Assembly (NCBI RefSeq): GCF_000143415.4
Contig: NW_003314386.1
Coordinates: forward strand, 274,791-338,790
Reading direction: 5' to 3'
From: Selaginella moellendorffii
Lineage: Eukaryota; Plantae; Lycopodiophyta
Length of the DNA: 64,000 bases
In this document: positions 11,549 through 52,330 of the stretch, piece after piece
How the letters are laid out: each line of letters begins with the position of its first letter
Position numbering within the stretch: the first letter of the stretch is position 1
Notes under the pieces: generated by a model
The model's input: only the letters and a program-made list of their open reading frames with translations
What the model was told of the DNA's origin: nothing
Databases searched by the model: none
Made by a program: the position numbers and the translations under genes

Positions 11549-11723
11549 TTTAGAGAGGGAGAGAGGCAGGAGAGATACACCATCAAGTTGGAAAGGAAGC
11601 GCAGACAAGGAGGGGCACGCTAGAATGCGTTGTCGCTACAAGCAGAAGTTTCTGGGCCGCTATGTGAAGCCACCACTGGAAGAGACGGAGCAAGATCAAG
11701 TTGTCAATACTGCTGCTGGGTGA
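11549..11723 (+). pseudogene. 3'-terminal fragment of the BUP/At5g04480-like gene (copy 0)
   Basis: Diverged copy of ~21207-21381 (ERERQERYTIKLERKR...RYVKPPLEETEQDQVVNTAAG*) with a frameshift, followed by the same 3' flank. Confidence 0.85.
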
Positions 11724-12006
11724 ACAGATTCTTGGGTGATTGTTTTGAGAGCCAGGAGAGCTCTTTCGACGCGAATTGTATACGGCAAGTGGACGACTGA
11801 CAAAAGGTAGAATTTTACCGGTCATATCCTACTGATGAGATTTTCCAGCGTGATGATGGTTCTTGGAAACTCTAGCTCAGTGCACGTTCGCCGCAAAGAA
11901 CGACCAAGCTTTTGTATAGCGCTGAAGAATCCGATCAAAACACACTCGAGTAAAGAACACAGGCAGGCAAATCGCGCGAGCAAAACTAGAACGGGGGGAT
12001 TGATCT

Positions 12007-13902
12007 ATGGGTGCTGTGTTGCTCGCAACTCTGGAGCAGTTCACCACGAACTTGGGAAAGTTGACATTCCTGTGGGCGACTGTGGTTCTCCTGGGGGGAT
12101 TCGTGACCGCTATGGACAAAAACGACTTCTACTTCATCACAGTCCTGCTCGTCAGCTATGGTATCCGGAGCTTCCGCTTCCTCAACCTGACCAAAGGCTT
12201 CAAGAAACCAAAGGTGGTCTCCCGCATCCAGGCACTCTTCATCGTTCTCTTCGTACTCACCACCATCGTCCTGGTAATCCTCTGGGACGTCGGCCTCACC
12301 ATCTTCGTGATCCTCCTGCTGGTGCTCAGCCTTCTCGCATTCGGGTACAGTGCTGGTTCCGAGCGCTCGTTCGTCCTCATCTACAACACGGCCCTGTACA
12401 ACGCTGAGATCTTTCTGGCTCTCCTCAACCTGGGAGCCTCGATCCACTGGCTACGACCACCGCACTACAAGTATCCAAAGTCGAACGAGTTCGTGGCAAT
12501 GCTCTGCTTCTTCTCGATCGTTATCGCCGAATCGAGCTTGTTCTTGTGCAACCGAAGCTGCTGGCAGATCATATCAGTGAGGTACAAGCTGCGAAAGAAG
12601 AACAACAGGAACCGACCGAGATTTATTCTGGAAACAAAGTTCAAATTCTTCGTTGCCGTGTACGAGACGACGCTGAGAGATGGAGCCATCAAGGGGCTGA
12701 GGATGAACTTGGTCGACTACGTCGCGAACGAGTTCTTGGAATCGAGAGGCAACCGGGAGCTGAGGAAGAGCTTGCTGATGCTGGATGCGGTGTGCCACTC
12801 GGAAGAAGAAAATCAGAGAAAGCAAAGTGGGAAGCTCCTCTTGGCATTTAAGCGTGAAGTTGTGGAGCGGCTGTTCGAGTGCATGGGCCACAAGTACTAT
12901 CTCACGTATAGGCGAACGGCGATTTCCCTAGTGGCCGAGATCTGCAAGGACGAGAACGCGTTCTTCGCTGTGGCACAAGTTGTCCAGGCCAGCGACACAG
13001 GCATCTCGCTTCTGGTGAAAGCGCTAGAGCCGGATACCAACAAGTCAGTGCTGGCGCTGCTAGGAAAGCTTGCGGCATTTGGAAAGATTGCCAATCCGAG
13101 TGTGATCCCGGACTTTGATTTTGCTCTAGGGGATACGCAAAAGAAGTGGAAGGATTCTCTCCGCCATACCTTCAATGGCGATGGAGATGATCCAGCCAGG
13201 GTCGATGTCGAGCCAGAGATCCAGAGCTCCAGGCAGAAGATCGCAAAGAATTTGAGGACGCTACTAAGAAAGAATCACGACTTGACAAGGTACCTGGCGA
13301 ATGCTCTCTTTTGTTCCTCCCAGGAGCTCCAGGAGCTAGCTCTAGACGCTCTCGCGGCATTGGTAGCCTATGATCCCAGCGATGGTGATCTTCTCCCTGG
13401 TTACAAGAGCGCCATCCATGGATTGTTCCATCTCGTCCGTGCCTGCGAAGCTGATCTGCGAGGAAGAAAATCGGCAGGGGTGCTGGATCTTCTCTGCCGC
13501 AAGAATCGCCAGTACCTTGAAACGCTGCTCGATGGAAGCGGCAGTAGCAGTGACGATGTTATAGCAGTTCTCATGAGCGCGCTCTCCTTTGGTTTGGACC
13601 ATCACGATGGCGAGAGGAGCAAGCATGCAATGTCGATTCTGTGCAGCCTCCACGATCAGAAGCTATTGAGCGAGGAGCAGGAGAAAGCGCTGGACATTGC
13701 AAAGATCGTGGACATGGTGACCACTATGACGAGCTCAAGACCAAGTGGCCATGGCTTGACTGGGGAGAGCTCGATCACCCAACCCATGGAAGGGATTGGT
13801 CTGGCATTAGAAGTAGCCGAGCTTTGGGTTTTAGCTGCTTGGCCATCACAATGCTCATCAGCTGTTCCGACGGCATCACGGATTCACAATCAACCAAGGT
13901 AA
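12007..13902 (+). CDS. BLE2-like / ARM-repeat-superfamily multi-TM protein, copy A (631 aa, intact)
   Basis: LEQFTTNLGKLTFLWATVVLLGGFV...DFYFITVLLV, FFSIVIAESSLFL, FF..YETTLRDGAIKGLRMNLVDY match the plant family of rice BLE2 / Arabidopsis At3g06210, At5g18980 (WATVVLLGGF signature). N-terminal TM helices, then helical repeats. Confidence 0.85.
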   Translation: MGAVLLATLEQFTTNLGKLTFLWATVVLLGGFVTAMDKNDFYFITVLLVSYGIRSFRFLNLTKGFKKPKVVSRIQALFIVLFVLTTIVLVILWDVGLTIFVILLLVLSLLAFGYSAGSERSFVLIYNTALYNAEIFLALLNLGASIHWLRPPHYKYPKSNEFVAMLCFFSIVIAESSLFLCNRSCWQIISVRYKLRKKNNRNRPRFILETKFKFFVAVYETTLRDGAIKGLRMNLVDYVANEFLESRGNRELRKSLLMLDAVCHSEEENQRKQSGKLLLAFKREVVERLFECMGHKYYLTYRRTAISLVAEICKDENAFFAVAQVVQASDTGISLLVKALEPDTNKSVLALLGKLAAFGKIANPSVIPDFDFALGDTQKKWKDSLRHTFNGDGDDPARVDVEPEIQSSRQKIAKNLRTLLRKNHDLTRYLANALFCSSQELQELALDALAALVAYDPSDGDLLPGYKSAIHGLFHLVRACEADLRGRKSAGVLDLLCRKNRQYLETLLDGSGSSSDDVIAVLMSALSFGLDHHDGERSKHAMSILCSLHDQKLLSEEQEKALDIAKIVDMVTTMTSSRPSGHGLTGESSITQPMEGIGLALEVAELWVLAAWPSQCSSAVPTASRIHNQPR

Positions 13903-14176: not shown

Positions 14177-16507
14177 TCAATCGTCCAAGCTATCCATCAG
14201 CTCCGCCACTTCCGATTTGAGGTGAGTGTACTTTTGCTCGTGGGGAGCGAGGCGTGAATCGATCTCCTTGCTGCTCATCTTCCTCTCGTACAAATCCACC
14301 GTGAGATTCAGCTTCTGGAGAAGCCTCTCGTGCTTCTCTTTCTCTTTCGTGATCAAGGCCTCCACCTGTAATGATCCTCAATTAGCAAACAAACGAATGG
14401 AAAGAAAAAAAACGTACCTTTGAGTTGACACTTGACGAGCGTGAAGTTGCTTGCAACGCTTCGTGAATGGCTTTCACTTCCTTGGACAGCGTTGCATCTA
14501 CTAGTTTTTTGCTGGCTTTGCAAGGAGCAACGTCGCCGGTACGGGCGAGGTCACGCAATGCTGCCTCGAGCTTCTCAGCCTCGAAGAGCCGTCGTTTCAT
14601 GAGCTTTTGGAAGCGTTGCAGAAGATCAAGGACCTAGTCACAGCAGATATTTATCGGTCAGAAAAAGAAAAGAAAAGAGAGGACTCTTAGATATATGCTC
14701 ACCTCCTCTTGCTGGAGACGAGCTTGGTAAGCGGCAGAGGACTTCGATATTGGAAAATCGAAGTGCAAGTACGCCATGCAAGCTAAGAAGAAGCAGAAGA
14801 AGCCGAAAATGAGCATCAGTGGTTCCGCAAGCATGGCCAGAGGATTAAATTTGTATTTGACCTGCAGGGATGATATCATTTTCTCAAGTTTTTCCGTCTG
14901 TGAAGACCTCATACCTGAAACGGTACATTGTGCTCGGCGACAACATTTTTCTTCGTGAGGACGACGACTTTACGACCAACTGTATCTAAGTAGCTATGTT
15001 TCACCTGGAAAAAACAGCCACCCTGTTAAACATCAACTAAACTGGAGCAAGTTATATACCTCCTGATGTTGCTCATCCAAAGCTAATGGTGCTTCCACAC
15101 TGGGATCTCTTGATCCCTCGGGCAGAACAACCTGAAACCATTGCGTTAGCAGCTCAACATGAACAAAATAGTAAGTTTAAGTACCTTTGTTGTAATCTTC
15201 TCCACAACTACGTCGACAAGAGGACTACCGAAGGTAAAGTTAAGGTAGCGGCTTCCATCAGGAGCCAAAAACACAAAATCTTGGAGAGGGACACTGTATC
15301 CCAAAGTAAACTTCACTTGCCAGCCTCCAAAAAGCGGATATCTTGGCTCAAACTCAACTATCGTCTGCCAAGATCAAACAATCATACACTCGAAAACACG
15401 AGAGGAAAGAATTCGAAATACTTACTCTTTTAGGCTCGTTCCTGACATGAGAAGTAGAAATGTTTCCAATCTCATCACGATAGTAGATCGAGTGTGCCCG
15501 TGGGGGCAAGATCGCGGCAAGATAGCGAAAGGCAGAAACACCATTTCCTTTAGCCTGATAATCTAGCCTGCAAAAGTTCAGTTAGTCCAATAATCACTGA
15601 GGAAAATGAATAATTTACAGACTAACCTGGAAAATCCACCTTTCAGACGCGCTCCAGTATGCTTGAGGTGATAGTTCTCGGTAGCATACACGTTCCCCCA
15701 GTGCGAGATCTCGATCTCCTGCTCAAGTGTTTCCACTACTGCAAACGGCCGATTGTTCTCAAACTGGAGCGTCACAGGTGCTTGGCTGAGGGGCGAAACG
15801 TTCTCGTAAGGTCCATACTTGATCTCCTTGTCTCCCAACTTGGTCGGCTCCACTTTGGTATAGGACTCCACACGGCTGCCTGGAAGCTTGAAGAAAGTTG
15901 TCTGGAACTTCACCAGATATGGAGAAAGCACGTATGCCGAGTCGTGGTATAGCACGAGCTGTGTCTCGGACTGACGAATCTCTCGTGGGAAGGGCGTCAG
16001 CGTATGTGTAAGCGCGTACTGGACATCGATGGTCGCTGCCTGGCCTTGCTCTAGAGATTTCTCTAGAGAGATTTCGAAGTAGACAGCATCGGAGCTCGGA
16101 TCTTCCTTCTTCTCGACTTCTTTCACGGTTAGAGGCGCGGATTGTGTCCTCGACTTGCCTTTCACTGACACAGACGCGGCCGAGATATATGCGAGATGGT
16201 CGAATTGATCCTTGGAAAGCGCAAACAAGAACTTGGTCGCTGGATCGGATCCGGAATTTTCGATCTGGAAATGGAAGCGAGATTTACCAGGGATGACTGA
16301 GAATGAAATTACCTTGAAAGAAACGAGGGTTCTTGCCACTTGCGATGTCAGATCGACCTGCGAAACTCCCGATCAAAAGATTTCGAGAGAAATGCGGCAA
16401 CATACCCGACGATCAAGCTTGGCGACCACTAAATCTTCAGCCAAGGCAGCGCCGGTGAGGATCCACAGTGCCAGGCAGCCGATCAGGCACAGCGACGAAG
16501 CCGCCAT
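14177..16507 (-). CDS. OST1: Ribophorin I / oligosaccharyltransferase subunit 1 (multi-exon)
   Basis: Signal peptide MAASSLCLIGCLALWILTGAALA; PFPREIRQSETQLV, KYGPYEN, EIEISHWGN, YYRDEIGNISTS, SYLDTVGR, TM EPLMLIFGFFCFF, coiled-coil tail ending LMDSLDD*; short GT-AG introns. Confidence 0.95.
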
Positions 16508-16509
16508 CA

Positions 16510-16541
16510 AAACCCTAGTGACCTAAGCCCAAGAACCCTAA
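16510..16541. promoter_or_regulatory. Telo-box-like motifs (AAACCCTAG, GAACCCTAA) immediately upstream of OST1
   Basis: Two A(A/G)ACCCTA motifs 3-34 bp before the ATG. Similar motifs at ~17391-17398 and ~17451-17459 between the divergent LBD and PPR genes. Confidence 0.5.
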
Positions 16542-16587
16542 TTTCATTCACTGTAAGATATGTAAAAAATGGAACAATTCTCTAGCC

Positions 16588-17150
16588 CTAATTTTCGAGC
16601 AGCGATCCCGCCGAGAAGCCATCATGCGCTGCCGCTGATCCGATCGGTGGCCTGTAGTTCTGGTGATTGATTTCTGGCGACGATGGCGCTGGGGGCGATA
16701 GATGCGAGGGGGATTTGCAGTGCTGCCCTAGGGCGATCGTCGTGGAGGCGTGCTGCATTCGCATACACACGATCTCGGCCTGGGATACCGCGAGCTGTGC
16801 CTGGAGCTGGGCAACTTGTTGCTGGAGCGCCGAGATTGCGCCTACGCAGCCATAGACAGGGTCCCGGATCCGCGAATTCGCCTCGTATACCATGCTGTTC
16901 ACAGCGTCTGCCCGCTGGTACACTGGAAGATCCTGGAGAGAGAGAAGGAGGAGCTCGATTGATCGATTCAAAGGGGCTTTCTTACCTGGAGCATCTTGTT
17001 CACATTGCTGGCGCCAAAGACTTTGTGGACGTAGGCGAATTTCTGGGGCTCGTCCGGCGGGAAGAATGGGGCGAAGATGCAATCCTTGGCGCAGCGCCTC
17101 CTCAGAAGCTTGCAAGCGGCGCACGGCGACATCCCTCCAGCTCCTGGCAT
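16588..17150 (-). CDS. LBD: LOB-domain (AS2/LBD) transcription factor, class I; 2 exons (17150-16986, 16932-16588)
   Basis: CAACKLLRRRCAKDC C-motif, FAYVHKVFGASNV GAS block, RIRDPVYGCVG, leucine zipper LQQQVAQLQAQL; 53-nt GT-AG intron at the conserved KMLQ|D position. Confidence 0.95.
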
Positions 17151-17459
17151 GATCAAACCCGGATCGATGACCGACTGGAGGGATTTCTTCTTTTCTTTGG
17201 CGAGATCAAGCAAAGGAGAGATCTTCTCCGCGAGAATTCGTTGCTTGTTTGCGCTGTCTGGGAGCGAATGAATGAAGGGGGCATTAGGTATGTGATCTTC
17301 CCCATCACCGCGTGGACTTAATTTGTAACCACCGATCGTGGCGGTCTCCGGAATTGGAAACTTGCGAGTAAATTTGCTCGTTATCGCAAGAACCCTAAAA
17401 AGCAGAGCCCGCTCTTTTTCAAAATATGGCGGGAAATTTAAAAGTTTCTTTTAGGGTTT

Positions 17460-18974
17460 ATGGGCGAGGGCCTCAAGGCGAGGCTGTTCGATGTCGTCAA
17501 GGCGTGTGGAATCTCCGGCAATCTCTTCAAATGCCGCGAGGCGCATCGCGAGCTGCTGGCCACGGATTACTGCCGCGATCGATTCTTCGCGAATTTGCTT
17601 GTGGAGATGTATGGCAAGTGTGGATCCGTGGGCGAGGCGGCGGCGGTCTTCTCCACGATCGATCGCCCCAATGTCTTCTCCTGGAACATCCTCCTCTCGG
17701 CATTTGCCCGGAATGGTCATCTGGAAGGGGCGCGGCGGACATTCGATGGCGCCACCGCCAGGAACGTGATCACCTGGAGCGAGATGATCACAGCCTACTG
17801 CTCCCATTCCAAGATCCACGAGGCGCTGGGGATGTTCCACCGGATCCCCCAGCGAAACATCGTCGCCTGGACAGCGATCCTCCAGGGATGTGCCAAAGCC
17901 GGGCGATTGGCCGATTCCGAGCGCGTCTTCTACTCGATCCCCCACAGCGAGTGCGATGTCATCACTCTCACGGCGATGTTCACGGCTTACGCGAGCGGCG
18001 GCCAGATCGATCGAGCGCGCGCCATGTTTGACGCGATCCCGATTCCGGAGAGGGATATCACGGCCTGGAACGCGATGATCCACGCTTACGTTCAGAATGG
18101 CATGGCGATGGAGGGCCAGGATCTCTTCCACGCCATGCCCAAAAGGGATAGATTCTCTTGGAGCCTCATTGTGTCGGGATGCTCGCAATTAGATACCGTT
18201 AGGGCAACCGAATACTATGCCAAAATGCCACATCGTGACATAGTCTCTGGAAACGCGATACTTACCGCAAATGCCGAGTTAGGGCATGTGTTACTCGCAA
18301 GAGATACCTTTAACTCCATGCCCGCTAGAGACGATGTAACGTGGAATAGCATAATTACCACGTATGCCAAGTCTCGCCAAAGTCACACAGCAAAGTTACT
18401 GTTTAACAAAATGCCCTGTTGGCATGTTGTGTCGTGGAACTCGCTAATAACAGGATATACCCTGGAAGGGCATTTGCTGGACGCTCGCGAGCTCTTCGAT
18501 ATTCTGCCCGTCAAGGACGTGGCGGCGTGGTCGAATATCCTTCAAGGATACGCCCACGCCGGGCGATTCACCGAGGTTTTAGGGCTCTTCCGGGGGATGG
18601 ATCTCGAGGGCACCGCGTCGGACGAGATCAGCTTCCTTGTAGTGCTCAGCGCTTGCGCCCACGCCGGCCTGATTGACGAGTGCTGGCGCTACTTCACATC
18701 GGTGGAGGAGGATCGGGGATTGCGCCACACGCTGGAGCATTTCGGGTGTATGATCGATGTGCTTGGCAGAATGGGGCATCTGGACGACGCCGCGGAGCTC
18801 ATCGCCGCCATGCCCTTCGTTCCTGGGGACATCGAGTGGACATCGCTGCTCAGCGCTTGCCGCGTCCACGGCGATGTTGATCTGGGAGCGCGATGTGCGG
18901 TCCAATCCTCGGATTGCGATCCCGAGCAAGCGACGCCTTACGTGCTCCTCTCCAACGCCTTCTGCCCGGAGTGA
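17460..18974 (+). CDS. PLS-class pentatricopeptide repeat protein with E domain, no DYW (504 aa)
   Basis: NLLVEMYGKCG, repeated ~31-aa (S)W(N/T)A motifs, DEISFLVVLSACAHAG, HFGCMIDVLGRMGHL, WTSLLSACRVHGD, ending PYVLLSNAFCPE*; single exon. Confidence 0.93.
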   Translation: MGEGLKARLFDVVKACGISGNLFKCREAHRELLATDYCRDRFFANLLVEMYGKCGSVGEAAAVFSTIDRPNVFSWNILLSAFARNGHLEGARRTFDGATARNVITWSEMITAYCSHSKIHEALGMFHRIPQRNIVAWTAILQGCAKAGRLADSERVFYSIPHSECDVITLTAMFTAYASGGQIDRARAMFDAIPIPERDITAWNAMIHAYVQNGMAMEGQDLFHAMPKRDRFSWSLIVSGCSQLDTVRATEYYAKMPHRDIVSGNAILTANAELGHVLLARDTFNSMPARDDVTWNSIITTYAKSRQSHTAKLLFNKMPCWHVVSWNSLITGYTLEGHLLDARELFDILPVKDVAAWSNILQGYAHAGRFTEVLGLFRGMDLEGTASDEISFLVVLSACAHAGLIDECWRYFTSVEEDRGLRHTLEHFGCMIDVLGRMGHLDDAAELIAAMPFVPGDIEWTSLLSACRVHGDVDLGARCAVQSSDCDPEQATPYVLLSNAFCPE

Positions 18975-21618: not shown

Positions 21619-23640
21619 ATGGGTGCTGTGTTGCTCGCAACTCTGGAGCAGTTCACCAGGAACTTGGGAAAGTTTATGTTCCTGTGGGCGACTGTGGTTC
21701 TCCTGGGGGGATTCGTGAACGATCTGAGAAACTATGACTTCTACTACGTCACTCTCCTGCTCGTTAGCTATGGCATCAGGAGCTTCCGGTTTCTCAACTT
21801 AGCCGAAGGCTTAAGGAAACCAAAGGTGAATTCCCGCCTGATCCTACTCGTCATCGCCCTCCTTCGCCTCCTCGTCCTCTTTCCCTTCGGCGCCTATATA
21901 GAAACCTTGCTGCTGCCTCTCTGGCTGCTGCTTCTCTTGCTGCTGCTTCTCTGGCTGCTGTACAATGCTCGCTCCGGGCGCTCATTCGTCATCGTCTACA
22001 ACATGGCCTACAATACTGAGATCCTTCTGGCTCTCGTCAGCCTCAGAGCCACCATCCGCTGGCTACTACTACTGCACCCCAAGTATCCAAAGTTCAACGA
22101 GTTCGTCGCAATGATCAGCTTCTTCTCGATCGTCATCGCCGAGTCGAGCTTGTTCCTGTGCATCCGCGGCTGCTGGGAGATCATATCAGTGAGGTACAAG
22201 AAGGCGAAGAAGAACAGGGGCCGACCGAGATTTCTCCTGGAAACTAAGTCCAAGTTCTTCGTTGCCGTGTACGAGACGACGCTGAGAGATGGAGCCATCA
22301 AGGGGCTAAGGATGAACTTGGTCGACTACGTCGCGAACGAGTTCTTGCAATCGAGAGGCAACCGGGAGCTGAGGAAGAGCTTGCTGATGCTGGATGCGGT
22401 GTGCCACTGGGAAGAAGAAGATCAGAGAAAGCAAAGTGGGAAGCTCCTCTTGGCATCTAAGCGTCAAGTTGTGGAGCGGCTGTTCGAGTGCATGGGCCAC
22501 AAGTACTATCTCATCTACCGGCGAGCGGCGATTTCTCTAGTGGCCGAGATCTGCGAAGATGAAAACGCCTTCTTAGCTGTGGCACACCTCGTCCAGGCCA
22601 GTGATGAAGGCGTCTCGCTTCTGGTGAAAGCGCTGGAGCCGGATACCAACAAGTCGGTGCTGGAGCTGCTAGGAAAGCTTGCGGCATTTGGAGGGATTGC
22701 CAATGCCGAGCCGGGTGTGATCGCGAATTTTGATTTTGCTAGAGGGGATACGCACAAGGAGTGGAAGGATTCCCTGCGCTATACCTTCAATGGCGATGGA
22801 GATGATCCAGCCAGGGTCGATGTAGAGCCAGAGACCCAGAGCTCCAGGCAGAAGATCGCAGCGAATTTGAGGACGCTACTCAGGAAGAATCACGACTTGA
22901 CAAGGTACCTCGCGAATGCTCTCTTTTGTTCCTCCCAGGAGCTCCAGGAGCTAGCTCTAGACGCTCTCGCGGCATTGCTAGCCTATGATCCCAGCCATGG
23001 TGGTCTTCTCCCTGGTTACAAGAGCGTCATCTATGGATTGTTCCAACTCCTCCGTACCTGCCAAGCTGATCCACTAGGAAGCAAAGTGGCAGTAGTGCTG
23101 GATCTTATCTGCCGCAAGAATCACCAGTACCTGGAAACGCTACTCGATGGAAGCGGCAGTAGCAGTGACGACGTTATAGCAGTTCTCATGAGCGCGCTCT
23201 CCTTTGGTTTGGACCATCACGATGGCGAGAGGAGCAGGCATGCAATGTCGATTCTGTGCAGCCTCCACGACCAGAAGCTGTTGAGCGAGGAGCAGGAGAA
23301 AGCGCTGGACATCGCAAAGATCGTGGACATGGTGACCACTATGACGAGCTCAAGACCAAGTGACCATGGCTTGACTGGGGAGAGCTCGACCACCCAACCC
23401 ATGGAAGGGATTGATGTGGCATTAGAAGTAGCCGAGCTTTGGGGTTTAGCTGCGCGGCCATCACACTCCTCATCAGCTGTTCCGACGGCATCACGGATTC
23501 ACAATCAACCAAGGTCGGATTTGGCAGATGATCTCTTGGAGAAGAGCACGCTTCATTGGCAAGACCCCCCAAATTCCCCACAGAGGGAAACTAAACAGAT
23601 CAGGATTCCAGAGATGCCGCAGCACAGCATTTCATTCTAA
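21619..23640 (+). CDS. BLE2-like TM+ARM protein, copy B (673 aa, intact, extended C-terminus)
   Basis: Paralog of 12007-13902. The codon after HNQPR is TCG here but a stop in copies A, C and D, giving a longer tail. Confidence 0.85.
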   Translation: MGAVLLATLEQFTRNLGKFMFLWATVVLLGGFVNDLRNYDFYYVTLLLVSYGIRSFRFLNLAEGLRKPKVNSRLILLVIALLRLLVLFPFGAYIETLLLPLWLLLLLLLLLWLLYNARSGRSFVIVYNMAYNTEILLALVSLRATIRWLLLLHPKYPKFNEFVAMISFFSIVIAESSLFLCIRGCWEIISVRYKKAKKNRGRPRFLLETKSKFFVAVYETTLRDGAIKGLRMNLVDYVANEFLQSRGNRELRKSLLMLDAVCHWEEEDQRKQSGKLLLASKRQVVERLFECMGHKYYLIYRRAAISLVAEICEDENAFLAVAHLVQASDEGVSLLVKALEPDTNKSVLELLGKLAAFGGIANAEPGVIANFDFARGDTHKEWKDSLRYTFNGDGDDPARVDVEPETQSSRQKIAANLRTLLRKNHDLTRYLANALFCSSQELQELALDALAALLAYDPSHGGLLPGYKSVIYGLFQLLRTCQADPLGSKVAVVLDLICRKNHQYLETLLDGSGSSSDDVIAVLMSALSFGLDHHDGERSRHAMSILCSLHDQKLLSEEQEKALDIAKIVDMVTTMTSSRPSDHGLTGESSTTQPMEGIDVALEVAELWGLAARPSHSSSAVPTASRIHNQPRSDLADDLLEKSTLHWQDPPNSPQRETKQIRIPEMPQHSISF

Positions 23641-27433: not shown

Positions 27434-27500
27434 NGAGATATCCATTGGAGTAAAGGATATAGTACCTCGTGACACCTCGATAGATCGAGCTTCTCCTCTG

Positions 27501-29833: not shown

Positions 29834-31867
29834 ATGGGTGTTGCTCGCAACTCTGGAGCAGTTCACCAGGAACTTGGGAAAGTTTTTGTTCCTGTGCGCG
29901 ACTGTGGTTCTCCTGGGGGGATTCGTGAACGATCTGAGAAACTATGACTTCTACTACGTCACTCTCCTGCTCGTTAGCTATGGCATCAGGAGCTTCCGGT
30001 TTCTCAACTTAGCCGAAGGCTTAAGGAAACCAAAGGTGAATTCCCGCGTGGTTCTACTCGTCATCGCCCTCCTTCGCCTCCTCGTCCTCTTTCCCTTCGG
30101 CGTCTATATAGAAACCTTGCTGCTGCCTCTCTGGCTGCTGCTTCTCTTGCTGCTGCCTCTCTGGCTGCTGNNNNNNNNNNNNNNNNNNNNNNNNNNNNNN
30201 NNNNNNNNNNNNNNNNNNNNNNNNNNNNNNNNNNNNNNNNNNNNNNNNNNNNNNNNNNNNNNNNNNNNNNTCTCTTGCTGCTGCTTCTCTTGCTGCTGTA
30301 CAATGCTCGCTCCGGGCGCTCATTCGTCATCGTCTACAACATGGCCTACAATACTGAGATCCTTCTGGCTCTCGTCAGCCTCAGAGTCACGATCCGCTGG
30401 CTACTACTACTGCACCCCAAGTATCCAAAGTCCAACGAGTTCGTCGCAATGATCAGCTTCTCCTCGATCGTCATCGCCGAGTCGAGCTTGTTCCTGTGCA
30501 TCCGCGGCTGCTGGGAGATCATATCAGTGAGGTACAAGAAGGCGAAGAAGAACAGGGACCGACCGAGATTTCTCCTGGAAACTAAGTCCAAGTTCTTCGT
30601 TGCCGTGTACGAGACGACGTTGAGAGATGGAGCCATCAAGGGGCTAAGGATGAACTTGGTCGACTACGTCGCGAACGAGTTCTTGGAATCGAGAGGCAAC
30701 CGGGAGCTGAGGAAAAGCTTGTTGATGCTGGATGCAGTGTGCCACTGGGAAGAAGAAGATCAGAGAAAGCGAAGTGGGAAGCTCCTCTTGGCATCTAAGC
30801 GTCAAGTTGTGGAGCGGCTGTTCGAGTGCATGGGCGACAAGTACTATCTCATCTACCGGCGAGCGGCGATTTCTCTAGTGGCCGAGATCTGCGAAGATGA
30901 AAACGCCTTCTTCGCTGTGGCACACGTCGTCCAGGCCAGTGATGAAGGCGTCTCGCTTCTGGTGAAAGCGCTGGAGCCGGATACCAACAAGTCGGTGCTG
31001 GAGCTGCTAGGAAAGCTTGCGGCATTTGGAGGGATTGCCAATGCCGAGCCGGGTGTGATCGCGAACTTTGATTTTGCGCAAGGGGATATGGACAAGAAGT
31101 GGAAGGATTCTCTCAGGAATGGCGAATGGATCATCTCCATCGATGCAGGAGATGATCCAGCCCGGGTTGATGACGAGCCAGAGATCCAGAGCTCCAAGCA
31201 GAAGATCGCAGCGAATTTGAGGACGCTACTCAGGAAGAATCACGACTTGACAAGGTACCTCGCGAATGCTCTCTTTTGTTCCTCCCAGGAGCTCCAGGAG
31301 CTAGCTCTAGACGCTCTCGCGGCATTGCTAGCCTATGATCCCAGCCATGGTGATCTTCTCCCTGGCTACAAGAGCGTCATCTATGGATTGTTCCAACTCC
31401 TCCGTACCTGCCAAGCTGATCCACTAGGAAGCAAAGTGGCAGTAGTGCTGGATCTTCTCTGCCGCAAGAATCGCCAGTACCTTGAAACGCTACTCGATGG
31501 AAGCGGCAGTAGCAGTGACGACGTTATAGCAGTTCTCATGAGCGCGCTCTCCTTTGGTTTGGATAATCACGATGGCGAGAGGAGCAAGCATGCAATGTCG
31601 ATTCTGTGCAGCCTCCACGACCAGAAGCTGTTGAGCGAGGAGCAGGAGAAAGCGCTGGACATCGCAAAGATCGTGGACATGGTGACCACTATGACGAACT
31701 CAACACCAAGTGACCATGGCTTGACTGGGGAGAGCTCGACCACCCAACCCATGGAAGGGATTGATGTGGCATTAGAAGTAGCCGAGCTTTGGGGTTTAGC
31801 TGCGCGGCCATCACAATCCTCATCAGCTGTTCCGACGGCATCACGGATTCACAATCAACCAAGGTAG
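29834..31867 (+). pseudogene. BLE2-like TM+ARM copy C (start codon out of frame; gap in Leu repeat)
   Basis: ATGGGTG|TTGCTC lacks 5 nt relative to the other copies, so the ATG at 29834 is out of frame. The rest is open across the gap to HNQPR*. Confidence 0.75.
30171..30270. other. Assembly gap inside the 15-bp Leu-codon repeat of copy C
   Basis: N run flanked by CTGCTG repeats on both sides. Confidence 1.
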
Positions 31868-32199: not shown

Positions 32200-32960
32200 C
32201 TACGCGGGAATGGCGCAAGCAAGGAGGACGGATCCCGGAACTCGGAGTTTGAATAGTCGCAGGACGATCATCTTCCTCTGTCTGCCAGGAAGAAAGGTGA
32301 TCAATGTACCTGAAAGATTTTCTAGCAAATCGTTTTGTGTTCGCTTGAAATGTTTTCCATTGAGAGTCAGGCCCCAGAAAAGTTGAAGAATGTACTGCTG
32401 TGAAAGTTATGGATGGATTCAGCAGGTACGCATGGGTCTGTTTTCTTGGCTCAACGGCCACTAGCCGTTCCAGAGCGTCTTTGGCTGATCATTACATTGC
32501 CAGCAATGAGCTTTTTCTAATCTATCATTCTCTCTGGCTGTTACTTAACGAAGATGTTGCAGGCTCGCGCTTTCGGCAGCGATGCTTGGTAAGCTTTCAT
32601 CTTTCGAGGCGTCGAGTATTGTATTCCAGGCATGTCCTCAAAGACGTTGTCGAGATGCCCGACGNNNNNNNNNNNNNNNNNNNNNNNNNNNNNNNNNNNN
32701 NNNNNNNNNNNNNNNNNNNNNNNNNNNNNNNNNNNNNNNNNNNNNNNNNNNNNNNNNNNNNNNNGGCCAGCATGAGCTTTTTCTAATCTATCATTCTCGC
32801 TGGCTGCTACTTAACGAAGATGTTGCAGGCTCGCGCTTGTGGCAGCGATGCTCGGTAAGCTTTCATCTTTTGAGGCGCCAAGTATTGTATTCCAGGCATG
32901 TCCTCAAAGACGTGGTCGAGATGCCCGTTCTGGCATACGTGGAGAGCATCATGACACCAT
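32200..32960 (-). pseudogene. PPR relic (unit 2), partly repeated across a gap
   Basis: Homologous to 23860-24518. Sequence 32764-32950 repeats 32500-32660 after the N run at 32665-32763. Confidence 0.7.
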
Positions 32961-37591: not shown

Positions 37592-39375
37592 ATGGGTGCT
37601 GTGTTGCTCGCAACTCTGGAGCAGTTCACCACGAACTTGGGAAAGTTTATGTTCCTGTGGGCGACTGTGGTTCTCCTGGGGGGATTCGTGAACGATCTGA
37701 AAACCTTGGACTTCTACTACGTCATTCTCCTGCTCGTTAGCTATGGCATCAGGGGCTTCCGATTTCTCAACTTGTCCCAAGGCTTAAAGAAACGAAAGGT
37801 GAATTCCCGCCTGATCCTACTCGTCATCGCCCTCTTTCCCCTCATCGCCCTCTTTGGCCCCTTGGGCGGCCCAGTATTGTTCTTGCAATGCCGCTGCTTC
37901 TCTTGCTGCTGCCTCTCAGATTTTTGTACAATGCTCGCTCCGGGCGCTCATTCGTCATCGTCTACAACATGGCCTACAATACTGAGATCGTTCTGGCTCT
38001 CGTCAGCCTCAGAGCCACGATCGTCTGGCTACCACAGCACCACAATTATCCAAAGTTCAACGAGCTCGTCGCAATGATCAGCTTCTCCTCGATCGTCATC
38101 GCCGAGTCGAGCTTGTTCCTGTGCATCCACGGCTGCTGGGAGATCATATCAGTGAGGTACAAGAAGGCGAAGAAGAACAGGGACCGACCGAGATTTCTCC
38201 TGGAAACTAAGTCCAAGTTCTTCGTTGCCGTGTACGAGACGACGTTGAGAGATGGAGCCATCAAGGGGCTAAGGATGAACTTGGTCGACTACGTCGCGAA
38301 CGAGTTCTTGGAATCGAGAGGCAACCGGGAGCTGAGGAAGAGCTTGCTGATGCTGGATGCGGTGTGCCACTGGGAAGAAGAAGATCAGAGAAAGCAAAGT
38401 GGGAAGCTCCTCTTGGCATCTAAGCGTCAAGTTGTGGAGCGGCTGTTCGAGTGCATGAGCCACAAGTACTATCTCATCTACCGGCGAGCGGCGATTTCTC
38501 TAGCGGCCGAGATCTGCGAAGATGAAAACGCCTTCTTAGCTGTGGCACACCTCGTCCAGGCCAGTGGTGAAGGCGTCTCGCTTCTGGTGAAAGCGCTGGA
38601 GCCGGATACCAACAAGTCGGTGCTGGAGCTGCTAGGAAAGGTTGCGGCATTTGGAGGGATTGCCAATGCCGAGCCGGGTGTGATCGCGAACTTTGATTTT
38701 GCTCGAGGGGATACGCACAAGGAGTGGAAGGATTCCCTGCGCTATACCTTCAATGGCGATGGAGATGATCCAGCCAGGGTCGATGTAGAGCCAGAGATCC
38801 AGATCTCCAGGCAGAAGATCGCAGCGAATTTGAGGACGCTACTCAGGAAGAATCACGACTTGACAAGGTACCTCGCGAATGCTCTCTTTTGTTCCTCCCA
38901 GGAGCTCCAGGAGCTAGCTCTAGACGCTCATGGTGATCTTCTCCCTGGCTACAAGAGCGTCATCTATGGATTGTTCCACCTCCTCCGTACCTGCCAAGCT
39001 GATCCACTAGGAAGCAAAGTGGCAGTAGTGCTGGATCTTCTCTGCTGCAAGAATCGCCAGTACCTGGAAACGCTACTCGATGGAAGCGGCAGTAGCAGTG
39101 ACGATGTTATAGCAGTTCTCATGAGCGCGCTCTCCTTTGGTTTGGATAATCACGATGGCGAGAGGAGCAAGCATGCAATGTCGATTCTGTGCAGCCTCCA
39201 CGACCAGAAGCTGTTGAGCATGGAGCAGGAGAAAGCGCTGGACATCGCAAAGATCGTGGACATGGTGACCACTATGACGAGCTCAAGACCAAGTGACCAT
39301 GGCTTGACTGGGGAGAGCTCGACCACCCAACCCATGGAAGGGATCGATCTGGCATTAGAAGTAGCCGAGCTTTGA
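37592..39375 (+). pseudogene. BLE2-like TM+ARM copy D
   Basis: Frameshift in the variable TM segment (~37870-37890), in-frame loss of LAALLAYDPS, and TGG->TGA stop at 39373-39375. Confidence 0.85.
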
Positions 39376-39779
39376 GGTTTAGCTGCGCGGCCATCACAAT
39401 CCTCATCAGCTGTTCCGACGGCATCACGGATTCACAATCAACCAAGGTAGGATTTGGCAGATGATCTCTTGGAGAAGAGCACGCCAGCGCTGCATTGGCA
39501 AGACCCCCCAAATTCCCCACAGAGGGAAACTAAACAGATCAGGATTCCAGAGATGCCGCAACACAGCATTTCATTCTAAATCTTGCTAATTCAAAACCAA
39601 TATATTCCCAATTGTTTGAATCTTTGGCACGACTACAACTCCAGTCAAACACACAAGTCTAAGAGAAACGTCAATGCAGATTTAGAAAATTCTCTCATTC
39701 GGATTCTCTTTTCTGATTGCCACGCCACTGACTATTCCTGCTCGAACTGGAGCTTTTCTGTTGACGTACTAAAGATCCC

Positions 39780-44979: not shown

Positions 44980-45695
44980 ATTATAACGGACCTTTGTTGC
45001 TAAGTCCTAAAGCCATTATAGAAGTTAAGAATTTCTGGCTTCCCCAGCTCAACGTTTCCTGAAGGCTTGGTGCAAGGTAACGAGCTAAAAAGTATACGTA
45101 AACAGTTTCCTTTATCTATGCTTAAATTTTTTTACAAATAATGTTCTCAAGTGAGTGAATAGTAATGAGGCCTACCTTGTTGTCCACGTGAATTCTTGAA
45201 GAAATAGACAAGATCTCTAGCTCATTCGAGGGAGATATCCTCTTTGGCTTGTGCATGCCCCATCATGCACTTTCGTATGAGAAATCAATCTCACTTTGAT
45301 CTTGTCAAACTATGAAGAAACACCGGCTGCCAAACTCGGGTTGAACATCCACCTGGTATGAAACGAAAAAGAATGCAAAAACTTGGGAGAAAAATAGAGC
45401 ATATGCTTTCAAAGCTTGATGTAAGTAATACCACATCCAACCTTGATTTCACACTCCCGATGGTATTGTGTCGCTTCCTCTAGCAAGATGAGTTTGTCTT
45501 CATTTCCTAGACTCTCACCAATGTTGTATCTTAGACACATTGAGAAAAACAAGAGTTTTAGAACGAAACTATTCTTTTTTCCGCTGACCTCAAGTGTAGG
45601 ATGTGTTAAATCGTGAACACCAAATGCTCAAACATGTCAAACTCAATGTCCTCTTTGCTCTTGTCTTCGTCTGGATCTGGCAGCTGGAAAGACAA
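44980..45695 (-). pseudogene. DCL (DUF3223) pseudogene, 5'-truncated duplicate
   Basis: Copy of ~54300-55010 (LPDPDEDKSKEDIEFDMFEHL..., GCGI, SRCFFIV) with a TGA stop in FIV*QD; exon 1 missing. Confidence 0.85.
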
Positions 45696-45699
45696 AAAT

Positions 45700-48600
45700 C
45701 CATTTACCTCCCTGGCAATAGCCACAAGCCATTCCCTTTTAGGGGTAGGATAGGTGTAGTGCACTGTAGGATAAATTTTAGGTACATGCAAAGGAATTTT
45801 TTATTTTAAAATAAAGTAGATTTATCAATAGTAGCATCTAAATTGATGTGGCTGATTATATCCAAGAAACAAGGTGGGTTATCTTTCAGGCATCATTATG
45901 CACCTTTTAAATTAGAAATTCAAAATGATCTTTGTGAAGTGATCCTAAGAGAATGGCTTTGAAAATGGAAAAGTTGTAAATATTACATTCTCTCAAGAAA
46001 GTAAGTGGGTAGTAAATGGCAATAGGGTTTTGATTAGAGATTTTAATGTGGCATATGTTCAAGTTGAGTTAAATCAATAACAAAGCTTCATTGATAATGT
46101 AATTGAAGTGACACAAGTTTGCTTTATTCATGTTTTTGTTCACATTATATAACATTCACACTTGTTATTTTTACATTAGCAGGTTGCTGATTGTATTTGG
46201 AATCTAATACATGGAGTGGAACAAGAATTTCAAAGGTGGGGTAAAATTAGATATCTTAAAGAATTTGATCTCATCTCACTTGAAGATTGAGGGATATAAA
46301 CTTGCTATAAAAACCACTTTTTTAGTTGGTAGTGACTTAAGTTCCTCCTTGGTTTCATCAGCCTCTATGAACTAATAACTCATGGATAAAACAATGGAGA
46401 AAGTTGCTAAGACTTGCAAAGAGTTAAGCTACAAATTTATTCTTTAGCCAAATTGTTAATTTCAGCAATTTAGAGAGCATAAAAATTCATTGCACAATGT
46501 GCAACTATATGGTTTAACTCTTTCTATAATGGGGTAAATACTTTATCATTGTGTTCATTTCAAATTTAATTCATTCTTTAGGCTCTTATACTCACAACAT
46601 AAAGCAACATTTTGTCTTCAAATGTTATGTCAAAACAATCATGCAAAGCACTATAGATCGCAAAGCAAAGTGAAAAATTAATAATCTGGATGTTGATGGC
46701 CGCCCCTGCAAGTTTCTTGTTACTGATCCACAACAGCCAAGTATCACTAAATTCTTTCCAACAACAAGTAAATTTACTTCTTTGATTAGTTTTTTAAAAT
46801 ATAGCAATACAAAATGGAGTAGGGACATTCTCAAGTAGTAAGTGATGAGAATGTTATAAAATCATGTTATAATTTGAATATCTTTTATTTGTGTTGAAAT
46901 GGTGTCATAATTATTAGGGATATCATTTTCCAACATATATGTATCACAAAAAGCCATTTTTATAAGATAAACCAGGATTGGTTCGCTAAGTTGGAAACTC
47001 GACAAATTATGATTTATCTTGGAATAAAAGTTAATATTGAAAGTACTTTTCGTCATAAATCATGCCTTTGAGTTGATTATGAAGGTTTTTCAAATCTAAT
47101 ATGCCTGAAGTGTGCTTTAGTTCCTATGGAAAATGGCTTTAGAATGCAAGTTGCTCACTAAATCAAGTTAAATGATAGAGGTGGTGTTGCTAGAGGTTCA
47201 AGAGTGGTTGCATATGCTAATTATCGACTGTATACTTTATCATCAAAAAAGCTTTTTGCTAATGCACGATCAAAGCATCAATTTATAGATAGCTTGAGAC
47301 TCAAGTTATGAAGCAACACCAGAGAATAACTGTCTTGTCAATGAAAGTTCAAGGTCTTAGTGAGCATTGTTTAGAGGATTTAACTCGCATGGATACTAGA
47401 AAATTTTGCAAGGACATTTGTGATGCAACAAGGCATGGCAAATTTGAAAGGAAGACAGGGTTTTAGAATTTTCTCATGGATATATCTAGAAACTTGTCTT
47501 GGGTAACAAGTGGACAATGATAGAATACAAGCTCGAAGTAGATTTTTGAGGCTAATTGAATCCATAAAAGAGCACGAATGTATGATTTTATATCCTTAAA
47601 CTTTGTTGGGCCAAGTACTTTTATGACTAGATGAGATATGAGAATGATGCTTCACTACAATGTTGGAGTGTAGGTATTTTTCTATAGTTTTTTGAAATTT
47701 TTATACACAAACTAAGCATTGAGTTTATAATTTTACATATTAGAAATTTTTTGTTAAAGTAAGGGTAAGAGAGGAAGGATACAATAACATTACAGTAGTT
47801 TTTGACAATTTCCAACAAGTTCATTATGGTTGTGTGCCTATGATGAACCCGCTATGCTACAATCTGCTAAAGTTAGTTTTTGTTATCCAACTTACTTGCA
47901 ATAGGTATTTAGAAATCTTAGTTGTGATTATAATAACTTTAATTTTACGGGTTTGATAACATGGATATTTAGCATCAATGGGAGTGAGTACACGATGCTT
48001 GGGACAAAAGTTTGCGGCAAGTTCTCGGCCCGATAATTGGCCATGCATCTGATAGTGATTCAAGGCATCAAAAATTAATGCTACAAGACTACACAACTAA
48101 AGATGGTGGTTGTTTTAAAATTGATTGGGATGGCTGTGTTTACAACATTACAGAAAGAGGATGGATCTATTTATGGACTACATGATCAAGACTTTATCCA
48201 CAATGGCAAAAAAACTTGTCAATCCACTAGATTCTTCAAGAAATCTTATCCTTGGGAAGTTATTAACAACACTAAATCATGTTAAAGAGGTCTTTGTTGC
48301 TCTTCCAAGACATGAACATAGCTTGAATTAAGATGATGTGGATAGGAAGGACTATCAAAATTGAGCTGCTGCATAGAGACTAGCATTTAAGAAAGTTCAA
48401 GCTTGCATATGCATGCTACGGGGTGGTGGATCCCAACCAAGTGAACTTAGTGAAGGAATTAAAGTGTACTTAAGTATTGTGGCAGATTACATTGACATTT
48501 TCTTGTCTCTAACTAGAAGGCTGTATCAAAGTTGCTACAAAAACATCTTTCTTCTTCAAGTTTGCTTTGTTTATACTTAGAGATTAATTTCAGTTCTTTT

Positions 48601-49400
48601 TTGTGTATAGGCTGTGATGACTTTAGATATTGCAAGACAAAGCTTAGAACAACTTCATTTCAAATGAGATTTTTTTGGATATTCAAATTAGTTGCCACTA
48701 CAATGTTCTTCTTATCAAGTTATTCATAGATAAATATTGAAAACACCACATTCCTCTAGATGAGACAGAATCAAACTGTTGTGAGTCATTTTTCAACAAG
48801 ATTGATGGTATGGTGAGAAACTAGTGAACTTATGACTCATTTGATTTGTTGGATAGTGCTGGTTCTATAAACCAAATTGTTGAGATAAAGGTTACATCAA
48901 TTTTAAAGTTTCCAGCTTCACATGAGAAACAAAAATCTATATGGGAATATTTAACAAAGACTTGAGAAGTAACAAGGAGGAATAGTTGCATTGAAGCTGA
49001 CTGATTATATAGGTATGTCTTTGTTAAATATTTTTTAATCTTACTCTCTTTATCAAGTATAGAAATAGATTTGAAAATTATGCAAGCTCTTCAAGCCGGC
49101 TTGCTTGAGGCAAAAGGTTTACTCTGTTTTTTAAGTATATCTCTACCAGATTCCAAGTGGAGCAAACCTTGGAAATATGAAGATTTTTTTCACAAAAAGG
49201 TAGCAAAAGCGCTAGAAGCTGTGAATGGAACAGATGATAAGGGAGATGTTCTAGAAGAGGTGGAAAGCAATATCACTTATGATGATGAAGAGCTAGCAGC
49301 ATCATTGGAATTACAGCATACTTTTGATAGTATGATTGATGAAGAGGCACTGCCTCAACCACAAATGCCACAGCAGGAAAAGTTCAAGCTGTTTGTGGAT
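45700..49400 (+). mobile_element. Degenerate DNA transposon, P-element/THAP9-like DDE transposase
   Basis: Across frameshifts: HYGCVPMMNPL..LKLVFVIQLTCNR (~47822-47905), IIGHASDSDSRHQKLM (48033-48080), GLHDQDFIHNGKK/LVNPLDS (~48175-48235), DRKDYQN*AAA*RL (~48340), NFISNEIFLDIQISCH (48651-), NCCESFFNKIDGMVRN (~48774-48821). AT-rich, many stops; ends undefined. Confidence 0.65.
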
Positions 49401-50409
49401 TGATGGTGGATACGATCTTAAATTTTTCTGTCCTCAGGTTGCTCTGTTGCCAAAAGCTGAAAACTCTCTAGCCGAGGTTGTGAGGGTCGGTATTCATAGC
49501 AATGCCGTTTATGGCAAGTTGGAAGATTTCTGGACTTCTTGCGATGCACGCAATGCTGGAAACTGCAGGTATGTGTCGAGACAAAGTTTGTCAAGGCCAA
49601 CGGTGTCCATTCCAGGCGGATTTTCATGGAGACATTCAAGACAATGTATGGCTTAAACAAAGACCAACTGGAGCTTCCAACGATGTCATCTGGTGTCTGG
49701 TCTAGCAAGCATTGCTGGGCTATGTCTACCTCATCTTTTGTGGAGTTCGTCATGTTTTCCTGGTCTATTGCAGTTTGTGGCACATACTCCAACGAAATAT
49801 CTTCTTAACTGGTTATCTTGTCCTAGGATGTTCGTGGACGCTCTCGATTCTCAGCTCGACGTTGAATATCACGATCATGGAAACTGTCCTCTTGCAACCA
49901 CTCAACTGGAGGTATGGTACAACCTCGAATTCTTGTGGCTGTGAGTTCTAAATACTAAATATCTTAGGCTCAACACTGCTACTGCCGTTTACTTGAGGTC
50001 CTGGTGAACGTTTGGGCGTATCACAGTGCCAGGAGACTCATCTACGTGGATTCTGAGACGGGTATAATGATGGAGCAGAACGCTCTCGAGAGCCGACGCG
50101 GGCATGAAAGTCAAGTGGTTCAGCTTTAACGTGCTCAAGGGAATGGACGAAGACATGGCCGAGAAAGTTGACGACGAGCATCCTACGTACCGGTGGCTCT
50201 GGCCACACACGGGAGAAGTGTTCTGGCAGGGAATTTTGGAGAGGGAGAGGCAGGAGAGATACAACATGAAGTTGGAAAGGAAGCGCAGGAACAAGGAGAG
50301 GCTGGCTAGAATGTGTAGCCGTTACAAGCAGAAGTCTCTGGGCCGCTATGTGAAGTCACCACCGGAAGAGATGGAGCAAGATCAAGCTGTGAATACTGCT
50401 GCTCGGTGA
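49396..50409 (+). pseudogene. BUP-like gene copy 4 (3' exons only)
   Basis: Same 5' breakpoint as copy 3 (GTGGATTGATGGTGGATAC); frameshift near 50103. Confidence 0.85.
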
Positions 50410-50679
50410 ACAGATTTTTGGGTGATTGTTTGAGAGCCAGGAGAGCTCTTTCGACGCAAATTGTATACGGCAAGTAAACTTTTTAGTGTACATATTCAGT
50501 GTCATTGCTATTAATGAGATTTTCCAGCGTGATTCTTGGAAACTCTAGCTCACTGGACGTTTCCCTCCAAACGACCAAAGTTTTGTCTAGCGCTGAAGAA
50601 TCCGATCAAAACACGCTTGAGTGAAGAACAGGCAAGAATATAGCTCCAGCAAAACCAGGACAGGGGGAATTGATCTATA

Positions 50680-52330
50680 ATGGGTGCTGTGTTGCTCGCA
50701 ACTCTGGAGCAGTTCACCATGAACTTGGGAAAGTTTATGTTCCTGTGCGCGACTGTGGTTCTCCTGGGGGGATTCGTGAACGATCTGAAAGTCTGTGACT
50801 TCTACTACGTCACTTTCCTGCTCGTTAGCTATGGCATCAGGAGCTTCCGGTTTCTCAACTTAGCCGAAGGCTTAAGGAAACCAAAGGTGAACAGCCGCCT
50901 GGTCCTACTCTTCATCGTCCTCTTTGTCCTCATCCCCGTCCTGGTATTCTTCGTGATGGTCGTGCTTCTCTTGCTGCTGCTTCTCAGATTCTTGTATAGT
51001 GCTCGCTCCCAGAGCTCATTCGTCATCATCTACAACATGGCCCTGGAGATCGTTCTGGCTCTCGTCAGCCTTGGAACCACGATCCTCTGGCTACCACAGC
51101 ACCACAAGTATCCAAAGTCCAACGAGTTCGTCGCAATGATCAGCTTCTTCTCGATCGTCATTGCCGAGTCGAGCTTGTTCCTGTGCATCCGCGGCTGCTG
51201 GGAGATCATATCAGTGAGGTACAAGCAGGCGAAGAAGAACAGGGACCGACCGAGATTTCTCCTGGAAACTAAGTCCAAGTTCTTCGTTGCCGTGTACGAG
51301 ACGACGTTGAGAGATGGAGCCATCAAGGGGCTAAGGATGAACTTGGTCGACTACGTCGCGAACGAGTTCTTGGAATCGAGAGGCAACCGGGAGCTGAGGA
51401 AGAGCTTGCTGATGCTGGATGCGGTGTGTCACTGGGAAGAAGAAGATCAGAGAAAGCGAAGTGGGAAGCTTCTCTTGGCATCCAAGCGTGAAGTTGTGGA
51501 GCGGCTGTTCGAGTGCATGAGCCACAAGTACTATCTCATCTACCGGCGAGCGGCGATTTCTCTAGTGGCCGAGATCTGCGAAGATGAAAACGCCTTCTTC
51601 GCTGTGGCACACGTCGTCCAGGCCAGTGATGGAGGCGTCTCGCTTCTGGTGAAAGCGCTGGAGCCGGATACCAACAAGTCGGTGCTGGAGCTGCTAGGAA
51701 AGCTTGCGGCATTTGGAGGGATTACCAATGCCGAGCCGGGTGTGATCGCAAACTTTGATTTTTCTCAAGGGGATATGCACAAGAAGTGGAAGGATTCTCT
51801 CAGGAATGGAGAATGGATCATCTCCATCGATGCAGGAGATGATCCTGCCAGGGTGCCAGAGATCCAGAGCTCCAAGCAGAAGATCGCAAAGAATTACTCA
51901 GAAAGAATCACGACTTGACAAGGTACCTCGCGAATGCTCTCTTTTGTTCCTCCCAGGAGCTCCAGGAGCTAGCTCTAGACGCTCTCGCGGCATTGCTAGC
52001 CTATGATCCCAGCGATGGTGATCTTCTCCCTGGCTACAAGAGCGTCATCTGTGGATTGTTCCAGCTCCTCCGTGCCTGCCAAGCTGATCCACTAGGAAGC
52101 AAAGTGGCAGTAGTGCTGGATCTTCTCTGCCGCAAGAATCGCCAGTACCTGGAAACGCTGCTCGATGGATGTTATAGCAGTTCTCATGAGCGCGCTCTCC
52201 TTTGGTTTGGATCATCACGATGGCGAGAGGAGCAAACATACAATGTCGATTCTGTGCAGCCTCCACGACCAGAAGCTGTTGAGCGTGGAGCAGGAGAAAG
52301 CGTGGGACATTGCAAAGATCGTGGACATGG
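50680..52330 (+). pseudogene. BLE2-like TM+ARM copy E
   Basis: Open to ~51890, then frameshifting deletions (~51893, ~52168). Homology to the other copies stops at KIVDMV. Confidence 0.85.

Follow-up and report, generated by a model that had tools for sequence, protein, structure and literature searches.

A tandem array of membrane-anchored ARM-repeat genes in Selaginella moellendorffii, probably shaped by birth and death with gene conversion

Does a cluster of partly disrupted paralogs, which combine a helical-repeat part with a divergent membrane segment, represent a diversifying defence locus or an ordinary tandem gene family? This question is raised by a stretch of 64,000 nucleotides (hereafter the window) of the Selaginella moellendorffii scaffold GL377690.1 (GCA_000143415.2; record positions are converted to window positions by subtracting 274790), for which a preliminary description, made from the sequence alone, had proposed an uncharacterised membrane receptor, channel or executor resembling NLR or ankyrin-transmembrane defence clusters. 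We consider it likely that the array is the product of ordinary tandem birth and death with gene conversion, and that it constitutes a divergent, species-restricted subfamily of a conserved membrane-anchored ARM protein, with three intact copies (A, B and Z) under weak purifying selection; the subfamily is probably still functional in these three copies.

A tblastn search with the 673-amino-acid (aa) B protein as query identified exactly five paralogs in the window, all on the plus strand and with the starts that had been claimed (12007, 21619, 29834, 37592 and 50680):

12007-13899 (12007..13902 as feature), plus strand: copy A, intact single-exon open reading frame (ORF) of 631 aa, SELMODRAFT_430167
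21619-23637 (21619..23640 as feature), plus strand: copy B, intact ORF of 673 aa
29834-31993 by tblastn (29834..31867 as feature), plus strand: copy C, SELMODRAFT_430172
37592-39576 by tblastn (37592..39450 as feature), plus strand: copy D, pseudogene
50680-52335, plus strand: copy E, pseudogene, SELMODRAFT_430176

Outside the window, 4.3-6.1 kb from its left edge, there is a sixth, inverted copy, Z (SELMODRAFT_430166; intact, 588 aa), which is 93% identical to A. It is part of a large inverted duplication: to the left of the window (L001 10001-11767 and 6279-7908), Z is accompanied in mirror arrangement by another block, 87.9% identical to positions 3433-5085 of the window. A and Z thus face each other head to head, as arms separated by about 15 kb.

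The preliminary count of two intact and three independently disrupted copies within the window holds, with A and B open and with different lesions in C, D and E. A, C and D terminate after aa 632, at the stop that is usual for the family; B has TCG at 23515-23517 where these three stop, a TAG-to-TCG change that adds 41 aa, and this stop loss is polymorphic, since one RNA run (X2) has TAG at the same position. All of the 11 family-invariant residues are retained in A, B, Z and D only. In C, a 5-nt deletion in codon 2 removes the in-frame ATG, and the frame is open on both sides of an N gap, up to the family stop at 31865-31867; C and E both carry W23C, which alters a tryptophan found without exception in the 33 aligned family members. 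Copy D has a 7-nt deletion near aa 100 (37889), a frameshift that splits the ORF into 37592-38077 and 37888-39375, together with a TGA at aa 608 (39373) and an in-frame 30-nt deletion at 38929. The frameshift is real and not a read error, because the D allele on scaffold GL377608, which is 99% identical, carries the same 7-nt deletion. Deletions of 10 nt (51894) and 20 nt (52167) were found in E, which is also truncated at its 3' end, where homology ends after 52335.

To which family do these copies belong? A Pfam scan of A and B gave no match above threshold, including Arm (PF00514), NB-ARC, LRR, ankyrin and PGG, and a word-index protein search with B retrieved five Selaginella proteins only, the candidates being swamped by low-complexity leucine words. 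An exhaustive profile search gave close kin in S. moellendorffii only; a further 120 or so hits are distant and for the most part plant proteins 700-1000 aa long. The named ones, which come from Selaginella, Diphasiastrum, Pinus, Tasmannia and Zingiber, carry the annotation 'ARM repeat superfamily protein' or are uncharacterised. BLASTP aligned B to a canonical Selaginella member with 27% identity over 335 aa (E 6e-20), WATVVLLGGFV being identical, and profile-profile alignment (hhalign) placed residues 3-577 onto columns 79-716 of 860 with a probability of 99.8% and E 4e-30; the last ~145 C-terminal columns of the family profile have no counterpart in the window copies. The N-terminal motif LE(K/Q)..G..F.WATVVLLGGF, followed by DF(W/Y) and a conserved arginine, is exact in A, B and Z, and E10, F21, W23, A24, L29, G31, D40 and R54 are invariant across 33 sequences. 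The second transmembrane (TM) pair and the FFY.VY...L.G..F.GL.MDLV block are also present, with N160, F168, F179, L180, W186, F213, F214, Y218, G229, L230 and M232 conserved. In a tree, the window copies stand on a very long branch beside the lycophyte members. Judging from these alignments, the copies are a divergent, species-restricted variant subfamily of a land-plant multi-pass TM and ARM-repeat family, and the homology to the WATVVLLGGF family that had been suggested is thus borne out; the array itself appears to be young and, among the sequences searched, occurs only in S. moellendorffii. A retrogene origin was considered and rejected, as the canonical genes are equally intronless, the coding sequence being a single exon in these and in the window copies alike.

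The labels At5g18980, At3g06210 and OsBLE2 for this family are putative and come from the preliminary description; the name 'BLE2' was absent among 120 listed relatives of a monocot family member, so that the BLE2 label is tentative. At3g06210 and At5g18980 have been listed as an ARM-family duplicate pair (PMC4060948), and OsBLE2 was described in a review as a brassinolide-induced protein of 761 aa with nine possible TM regions (PMC5172446). Our literature searches found no tested function for any member of the canonical family or of the window subfamily, and no work on transmembrane ARM proteins. Two Zingiber officinale members, LOC122002988 and LOC122002987, lie on one contig under successive locus numbers, with 66% identity between them, and may be an angiosperm tandem pair.

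The AlphaFold2 model of B (mean predicted local distance difference test score, pLDDT, of 71.8) comprises six N-terminal helices (2-31, 38-64, 73-87, 98-116, 122-150 and 159-199) and a helical-repeat domain (204-577), with disordered stretches at 360-403 and 578-673. In Foldseek, with E values of 1e-4 to 1e-3 and a TM-score (by target) of at most 0.69, the repeats at about 204-577 match importin-alpha, beta-catenin and designed ARM proteins, and the C-terminal part of the copies is, by its predicted structure, an ARM-type fold, which agrees with the helical-repeat part noticed earlier. The membrane domain modelled alone gave generic helix-bundle matches only, with Z-scores of 10-12 that the search tool rates as uninformative for helical proteins, and a further fold search with this domain (Atlas) found no specific match. 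From hydropathy, the distribution of lysine and arginine (positive-inside rule) and the model, we infer a topology with both termini inside and the ARM domain in the cytosol.

The divergent membrane segment corresponds to a hairpin formed by two of the six helices:

21799..21990, plus strand: variable hydrophobic hairpin of B, aa 61-124, with AlphaFold2 helices 73-87 and 98-116 of low confidence

DNA identity between B and A is 0.48-0.61 in aa 61-120 and 0.8-0.97 elsewhere, so that the divergence described for this segment was found again. The segment contains a 15-nt repeat, GCTGCTGCTTCTCTG, present 3.5 times in B at 21909-21960 and also in C and D, and most indels among the copies sit here. 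Between A and B, nonsynonymous divergence (dN) in the hairpin is 0.60 and synonymous divergence (dS) 0.69; the ratio of the two (omega) is 0.8-0.9, at saturated dS. The variability of the hairpin seems to be mutational (slippage, indels and poor alignability, with hydrophobicity as the sole constraint) and not the result of diversifying selection, because dS there is as high as dN. According to the model, no more than some six residues, those linking the two extra helices, would be exposed on the non-cytosolic side.

Selection was estimated over aa 126-632 (NG86, with confidence intervals, CI, from a codon bootstrap). Omega is 0.55 [0.39-0.82] for A-B, 0.49 [0.36-0.67] for Z-B and 0.61 [0.42-0.89] for A-Z, and 1.08 for B and the frameshifted D. 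Most ARM blocks have an omega of 0.24-0.46, the exception being A-Z at aa 196-360 (0.86, with a CI that spans 1), and no part of the protein is better conserved than the ARM surface. Among intact copies, no domain gave an omega robustly above 1, in a comparison of three copies with low power at single sites. These values indicate weak purifying selection on A, B and Z and neutral drift of D; selection is therefore not uniformly purifying, and nowhere positive.

These results bear directly on the proposal that the array is a diversifying membrane receptor, channel or cell-death executor of the NLR or ACD6 type, in which the hypervariable segment would determine specificity. Such a reading would account for the pseudogenes, the gene conversion and a locally divergent segment in one cluster, and for paralogs whose expression seems to vary between samples, B being seen in many runs and A chiefly in those of a single study; the combination of a repeat domain and a membrane bundle is also formally like that of ACD6. 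Nevertheless, the variable segment, where a specificity determinant would lie, is a predicted membrane-buried hairpin with some six residues on the non-cytosolic side and a dS as high as its dN, conservation is highest in the ARM domain, where binding would be expected, and omega is never robustly above 1 between intact copies. Furthermore, A and B contain no NB-ARC, ankyrin, PGG or other Pfam domain, the membrane domain resembles generic helix bundles only, and a single locus was found, with no clustering elsewhere. We thus did not find the defence function to be supported, and consider it very improbable, whereas the tandem expansion, pseudogenisation and mosaicism on which it had been built are all apparent in the repeat units, the lesions and the permutation tests described below.

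Mosaicism was assessed from runs of informative sites and by maximum chi-square, each with permutation p<=0.003. A sides with Z (174:29 sites) but with B in aa 525-633 (61:5); C sides with B (88:17) but with E in aa 375-410 (19:1), where C and E have a 12-nt insertion in common; and B sides with D except in aa 37-183, where it sides with C (52:5). Sequence exchange between the copies, presumably by gene conversion, is thus statistically supported.

Self-comparison of the window revealed that the genes are embedded in larger repeat units:

11542-13901, plus strand: unit A, ~84-86% identical to the other units
19262-26513, plus strand: unit B, with the 602-aa upstream gene, copy B and a downstream ORF (24055-24528)
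27501-34957, plus strand: unit C, 95.5-97% identical to unit B
35322/36358 to 40450, plus strand: unit D, 93.5% identical to unit B
48339-52333, plus strand: unit E, ~88-90% identical to units B and D

The upstream gene is not present in unit A. It is annotated at 19242-21381 with a stop at 21379-21381, 237 nt before the B ATG, and is a hypothetical gene without a Pfam match that is spliced and expressed, and duplicated whole or in part in each of the other units (27902-29571 in unit C; also in units D and E). Its C-terminal exons resemble, we presume, the C-terminus of At4g01210-like putative glycosyltransferases. ORFs without a family match follow B, C and D (24055-24528, 32400-32962 and 39994-40587). 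The possibility that these downstream ORFs (23677-24528 and its copies) are the missing C-terminal ARM exons was rejected, as they are unlike canonical C-termini and no RNA was found past 23682. Dispersed duplicates at 43530-45699 and 52719-55014, 77-91% identical, flank the interval between D and E and the region past E, which suggests that the D-E spacing derives from a larger duplication.

Is any copy expressed? Contigs from four runs of four studies, at least 99% identical to the window, span 20600 to ~23610; they cover the whole B ORF, including the variable segment, up to ~23610 with no indels within it. The four runs are RNA, because their contigs show GT..AG joints; three such introns of 54-64 nt, all upstream of the B ATG, have joints in all four runs:

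20732-20795, plus strand: intron
20880-20935, plus strand: intron
21447-21500, plus strand: intron

The contigs stop near 23605-23610, short of the extended stop of B at 23638, and in these four runs there is no contig coverage past 23682. A 3' intron at 23514 in B was considered and rejected, as the RNA contigs read through this position. At 21592, 27 nt before the B ATG, two of the four RNA runs have an 11-nt insertion, a polymorphism of the 5' leader or an allele. In one study, four RNA-like runs contain 0.60-0.72 of the sequence words of A, as against ~0.12 in B-rich runs, which hints at a narrower expression of A than of B.

The same contigs link the last exons of the upstream gene to the B ORF, and this brings in a second reading, namely that the array is functionless, a set of decaying duplicates whose open frames have just not yet been hit, the RNA of B being read-through from the 602-aa gene across the 237 nt between its stop and the B ATG. 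Half of the six copies are broken, omega is high (0.5-0.6), a very long branch separates the copies from the parent family and the B stop codon is polymorphic, all of which would be expected of such decay. However, the CI of omega excludes 1 in all three intact pairs while D is at ~1, and A, B and Z have lost none of the 11 family-invariant residues. It is also unlikely that chance alone would have left three ORFs of 1.8-2.0 kb open at a dS of 0.1-0.27, and A, which has no upstream gene, still has words in RNA-like runs. We therefore regard a functionless array as unlikely, and continued function of A, B and Z under weak purifying selection as the better account of the locus.

A third reading concerns the assembly, since some copies, and especially C, could be haplotigs or mis-joined contigs, placed one after another in a Sanger scaffold rich in gaps. 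Unit C is bordered or broken by three of these:

27217-27434: gap of 218 N between units B and C
30171-30270: gap of 100 N (placeholder) inside the C coding sequence, within the 15-nt leucine-codon repeat
32665-32764: gap downstream of C, with the same 163 nt on both flanks (32499..32927), 93.9% identical

The junction between units B and C has an equivalent in an independent contig (L002 1-2737, scaffold GL377608), which bridges it collinearly, filling the stretch of 218 N with 219 nt, and supports the order and orientation of the units across this gap. At the second gap, the left contig stops on a codon boundary and the right contig is one base out of phase; the continuity and frame of C across it are not judgeable, because the 100 N are a placeholder. 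The repeated flanks of the third indicate an unmerged contig overlap. Besides the gaps and this overlap, the presence of both haplotypes in the assembly, with a D allele on another scaffold, would also fit an artefact. In contrast, the copies are 3-15% apart, as against ~1% for the true allelic pair D/H, each has private lesions and mosaic blocks, the junction of the B-to-C type is spanned independently, and A, B, D and E lie in sequence without gaps. An artefactual origin thus seems very improbable, and the copies do not collapse into haplotypes. The L002 scaffold was also considered as a copy-number difference between haplotypes, and this was rejected, as its contigs are parted by N gaps of unknown size.

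The favoured explanation, tandem birth and death with gene conversion and residual constraint, has to be weighed against several points. An omega of 0.5-0.6 is high for a functional gene and is an average over a history with gene conversion, and three intact copies give no power to detect positive selection at single sites. The RNA contigs fuse B to the upstream gene, so B could ride on read-through and never be translated, and they show neither strand nor expression level. The topology draws on hydropathy, the positive-inside rule and a model in which the hairpin has a pLDDT of 51-68, the parent family offers no member of known function, and a scaffold role is deduced solely from predicted fold and topology. 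Finally, C is pieced together from three contigs and its state is uncertain.

With these points in mind, the history of the array and the probable working of its proteins can be summarised as follows. Segmental duplication of units of 4-8 kb, each with an upstream gene and a downstream ORF, produced the array, and gene conversion or unequal exchange turned the copies into mosaics. C, D and E decayed independently, with A, B and Z staying intact under weak purifying selection and at least B being transcribed. In the proteins, four conserved TM helices would be joined by a lineage-specific extra hydrophobic hairpin, in place of the canonical cytosolic loop; the 15-nt leucine-codon repeat would make this hairpin prone to indels, and only its hydrophobicity seems to be constrained. 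The bundle would anchor a cytosolic ARM solenoid of ~370 residues, whose most likely role is to bind proteins as a scaffold tethered to the membrane.

The parent family is widespread in land plants, usually in low copy, and this locus may serve as a natural experiment on its constraint: the TM2-TM3 loop, the C-terminal tail and the disordered insert appear to tolerate change, and the WATVVLLGGF hairpin, TM3/TM4 and the first ARM repeats do not. A more far-reaching possibility is that A, B and Z are Selaginella-specific, conditionally expressed, membrane-tethered ARM proteins whose copy number and hairpin are preserved by selection; they could, for instance, form a membrane module for stress or immunity that resembles ACD6. 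We regard this as speculative and very improbable; if true, it would be the first functionally distinct offshoot of an uncharacterised pan-land-plant family.

The analysis also corrects the reference annotation, from which B, the sole broadly expressed intact copy, is missing and in which the models of C, D and E are wrong. The GenBank record has no gene model for B; the model of A has an extra tiny 3' exon beyond the single-exon ORF, C is annotated from Met129 only (N-truncated) with the downstream ORF spliced onto it, D is annotated as an 801-aa fusion with the upstream gene, and the model of E jumps over its lesions.

Between A and unit B (14177..18974) lie unrelated genes:

within 14177..18974, minus strand: ribophorin I
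16588-17150, minus strand: LOB-domain gene
17460-18974, plus strand: PPR gene of 504 aa

Elsewhere in the window, a GMC oxidoreductase (56823-58467, minus strand) is represented by two overlapping ORFs, split by an intron or a frameshift, and positions 1-4000 are strongly purine-rich on the plus strand, with a GC skew of about 0.25 and an AT skew of about 0.2.

Three known systems can be compared with the array. The closest is the canonical family (~830 aa; SELMODRAFT_233590/132805, Diphasiastrum O6H91_14G030300 and Zingiber LOC122002988), which has in common with the window copies the N-terminal motif, the TM3/TM4 block and the block that follows it, an ARM-like solenoid homologous over residues 3-577 and a single-exon coding sequence. 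The window copies differ from it in that they are only 20-27% identical and lack the N-terminal extension, the long hydrophilic TM2-TM3 loop of the canonical proteins being replaced by a leucine-rich hydrophobic stretch of ~55 aa; they also form a cluster with pseudogenes among its members, in contrast to the single locus of the canonical Selaginella gene. NLR and ACD6-type clusters resemble the array in their tandem copies, pseudogenes, sequence exchange and combination of a repeat domain with membrane helices, but the array has no domains in common with them, no signal of positive selection, no second locus and no evidence for a link to defence. Finally, the armadillo proteins (importin-alpha, beta-catenin and designed proteins) have a solenoid fold like that predicted for B residues ~204-577, from which the window proteins depart in being 10-16% identical, without a Pfam Arm match, membrane-anchored by prediction and interrupted in their solenoid by the disordered insert 360-403.

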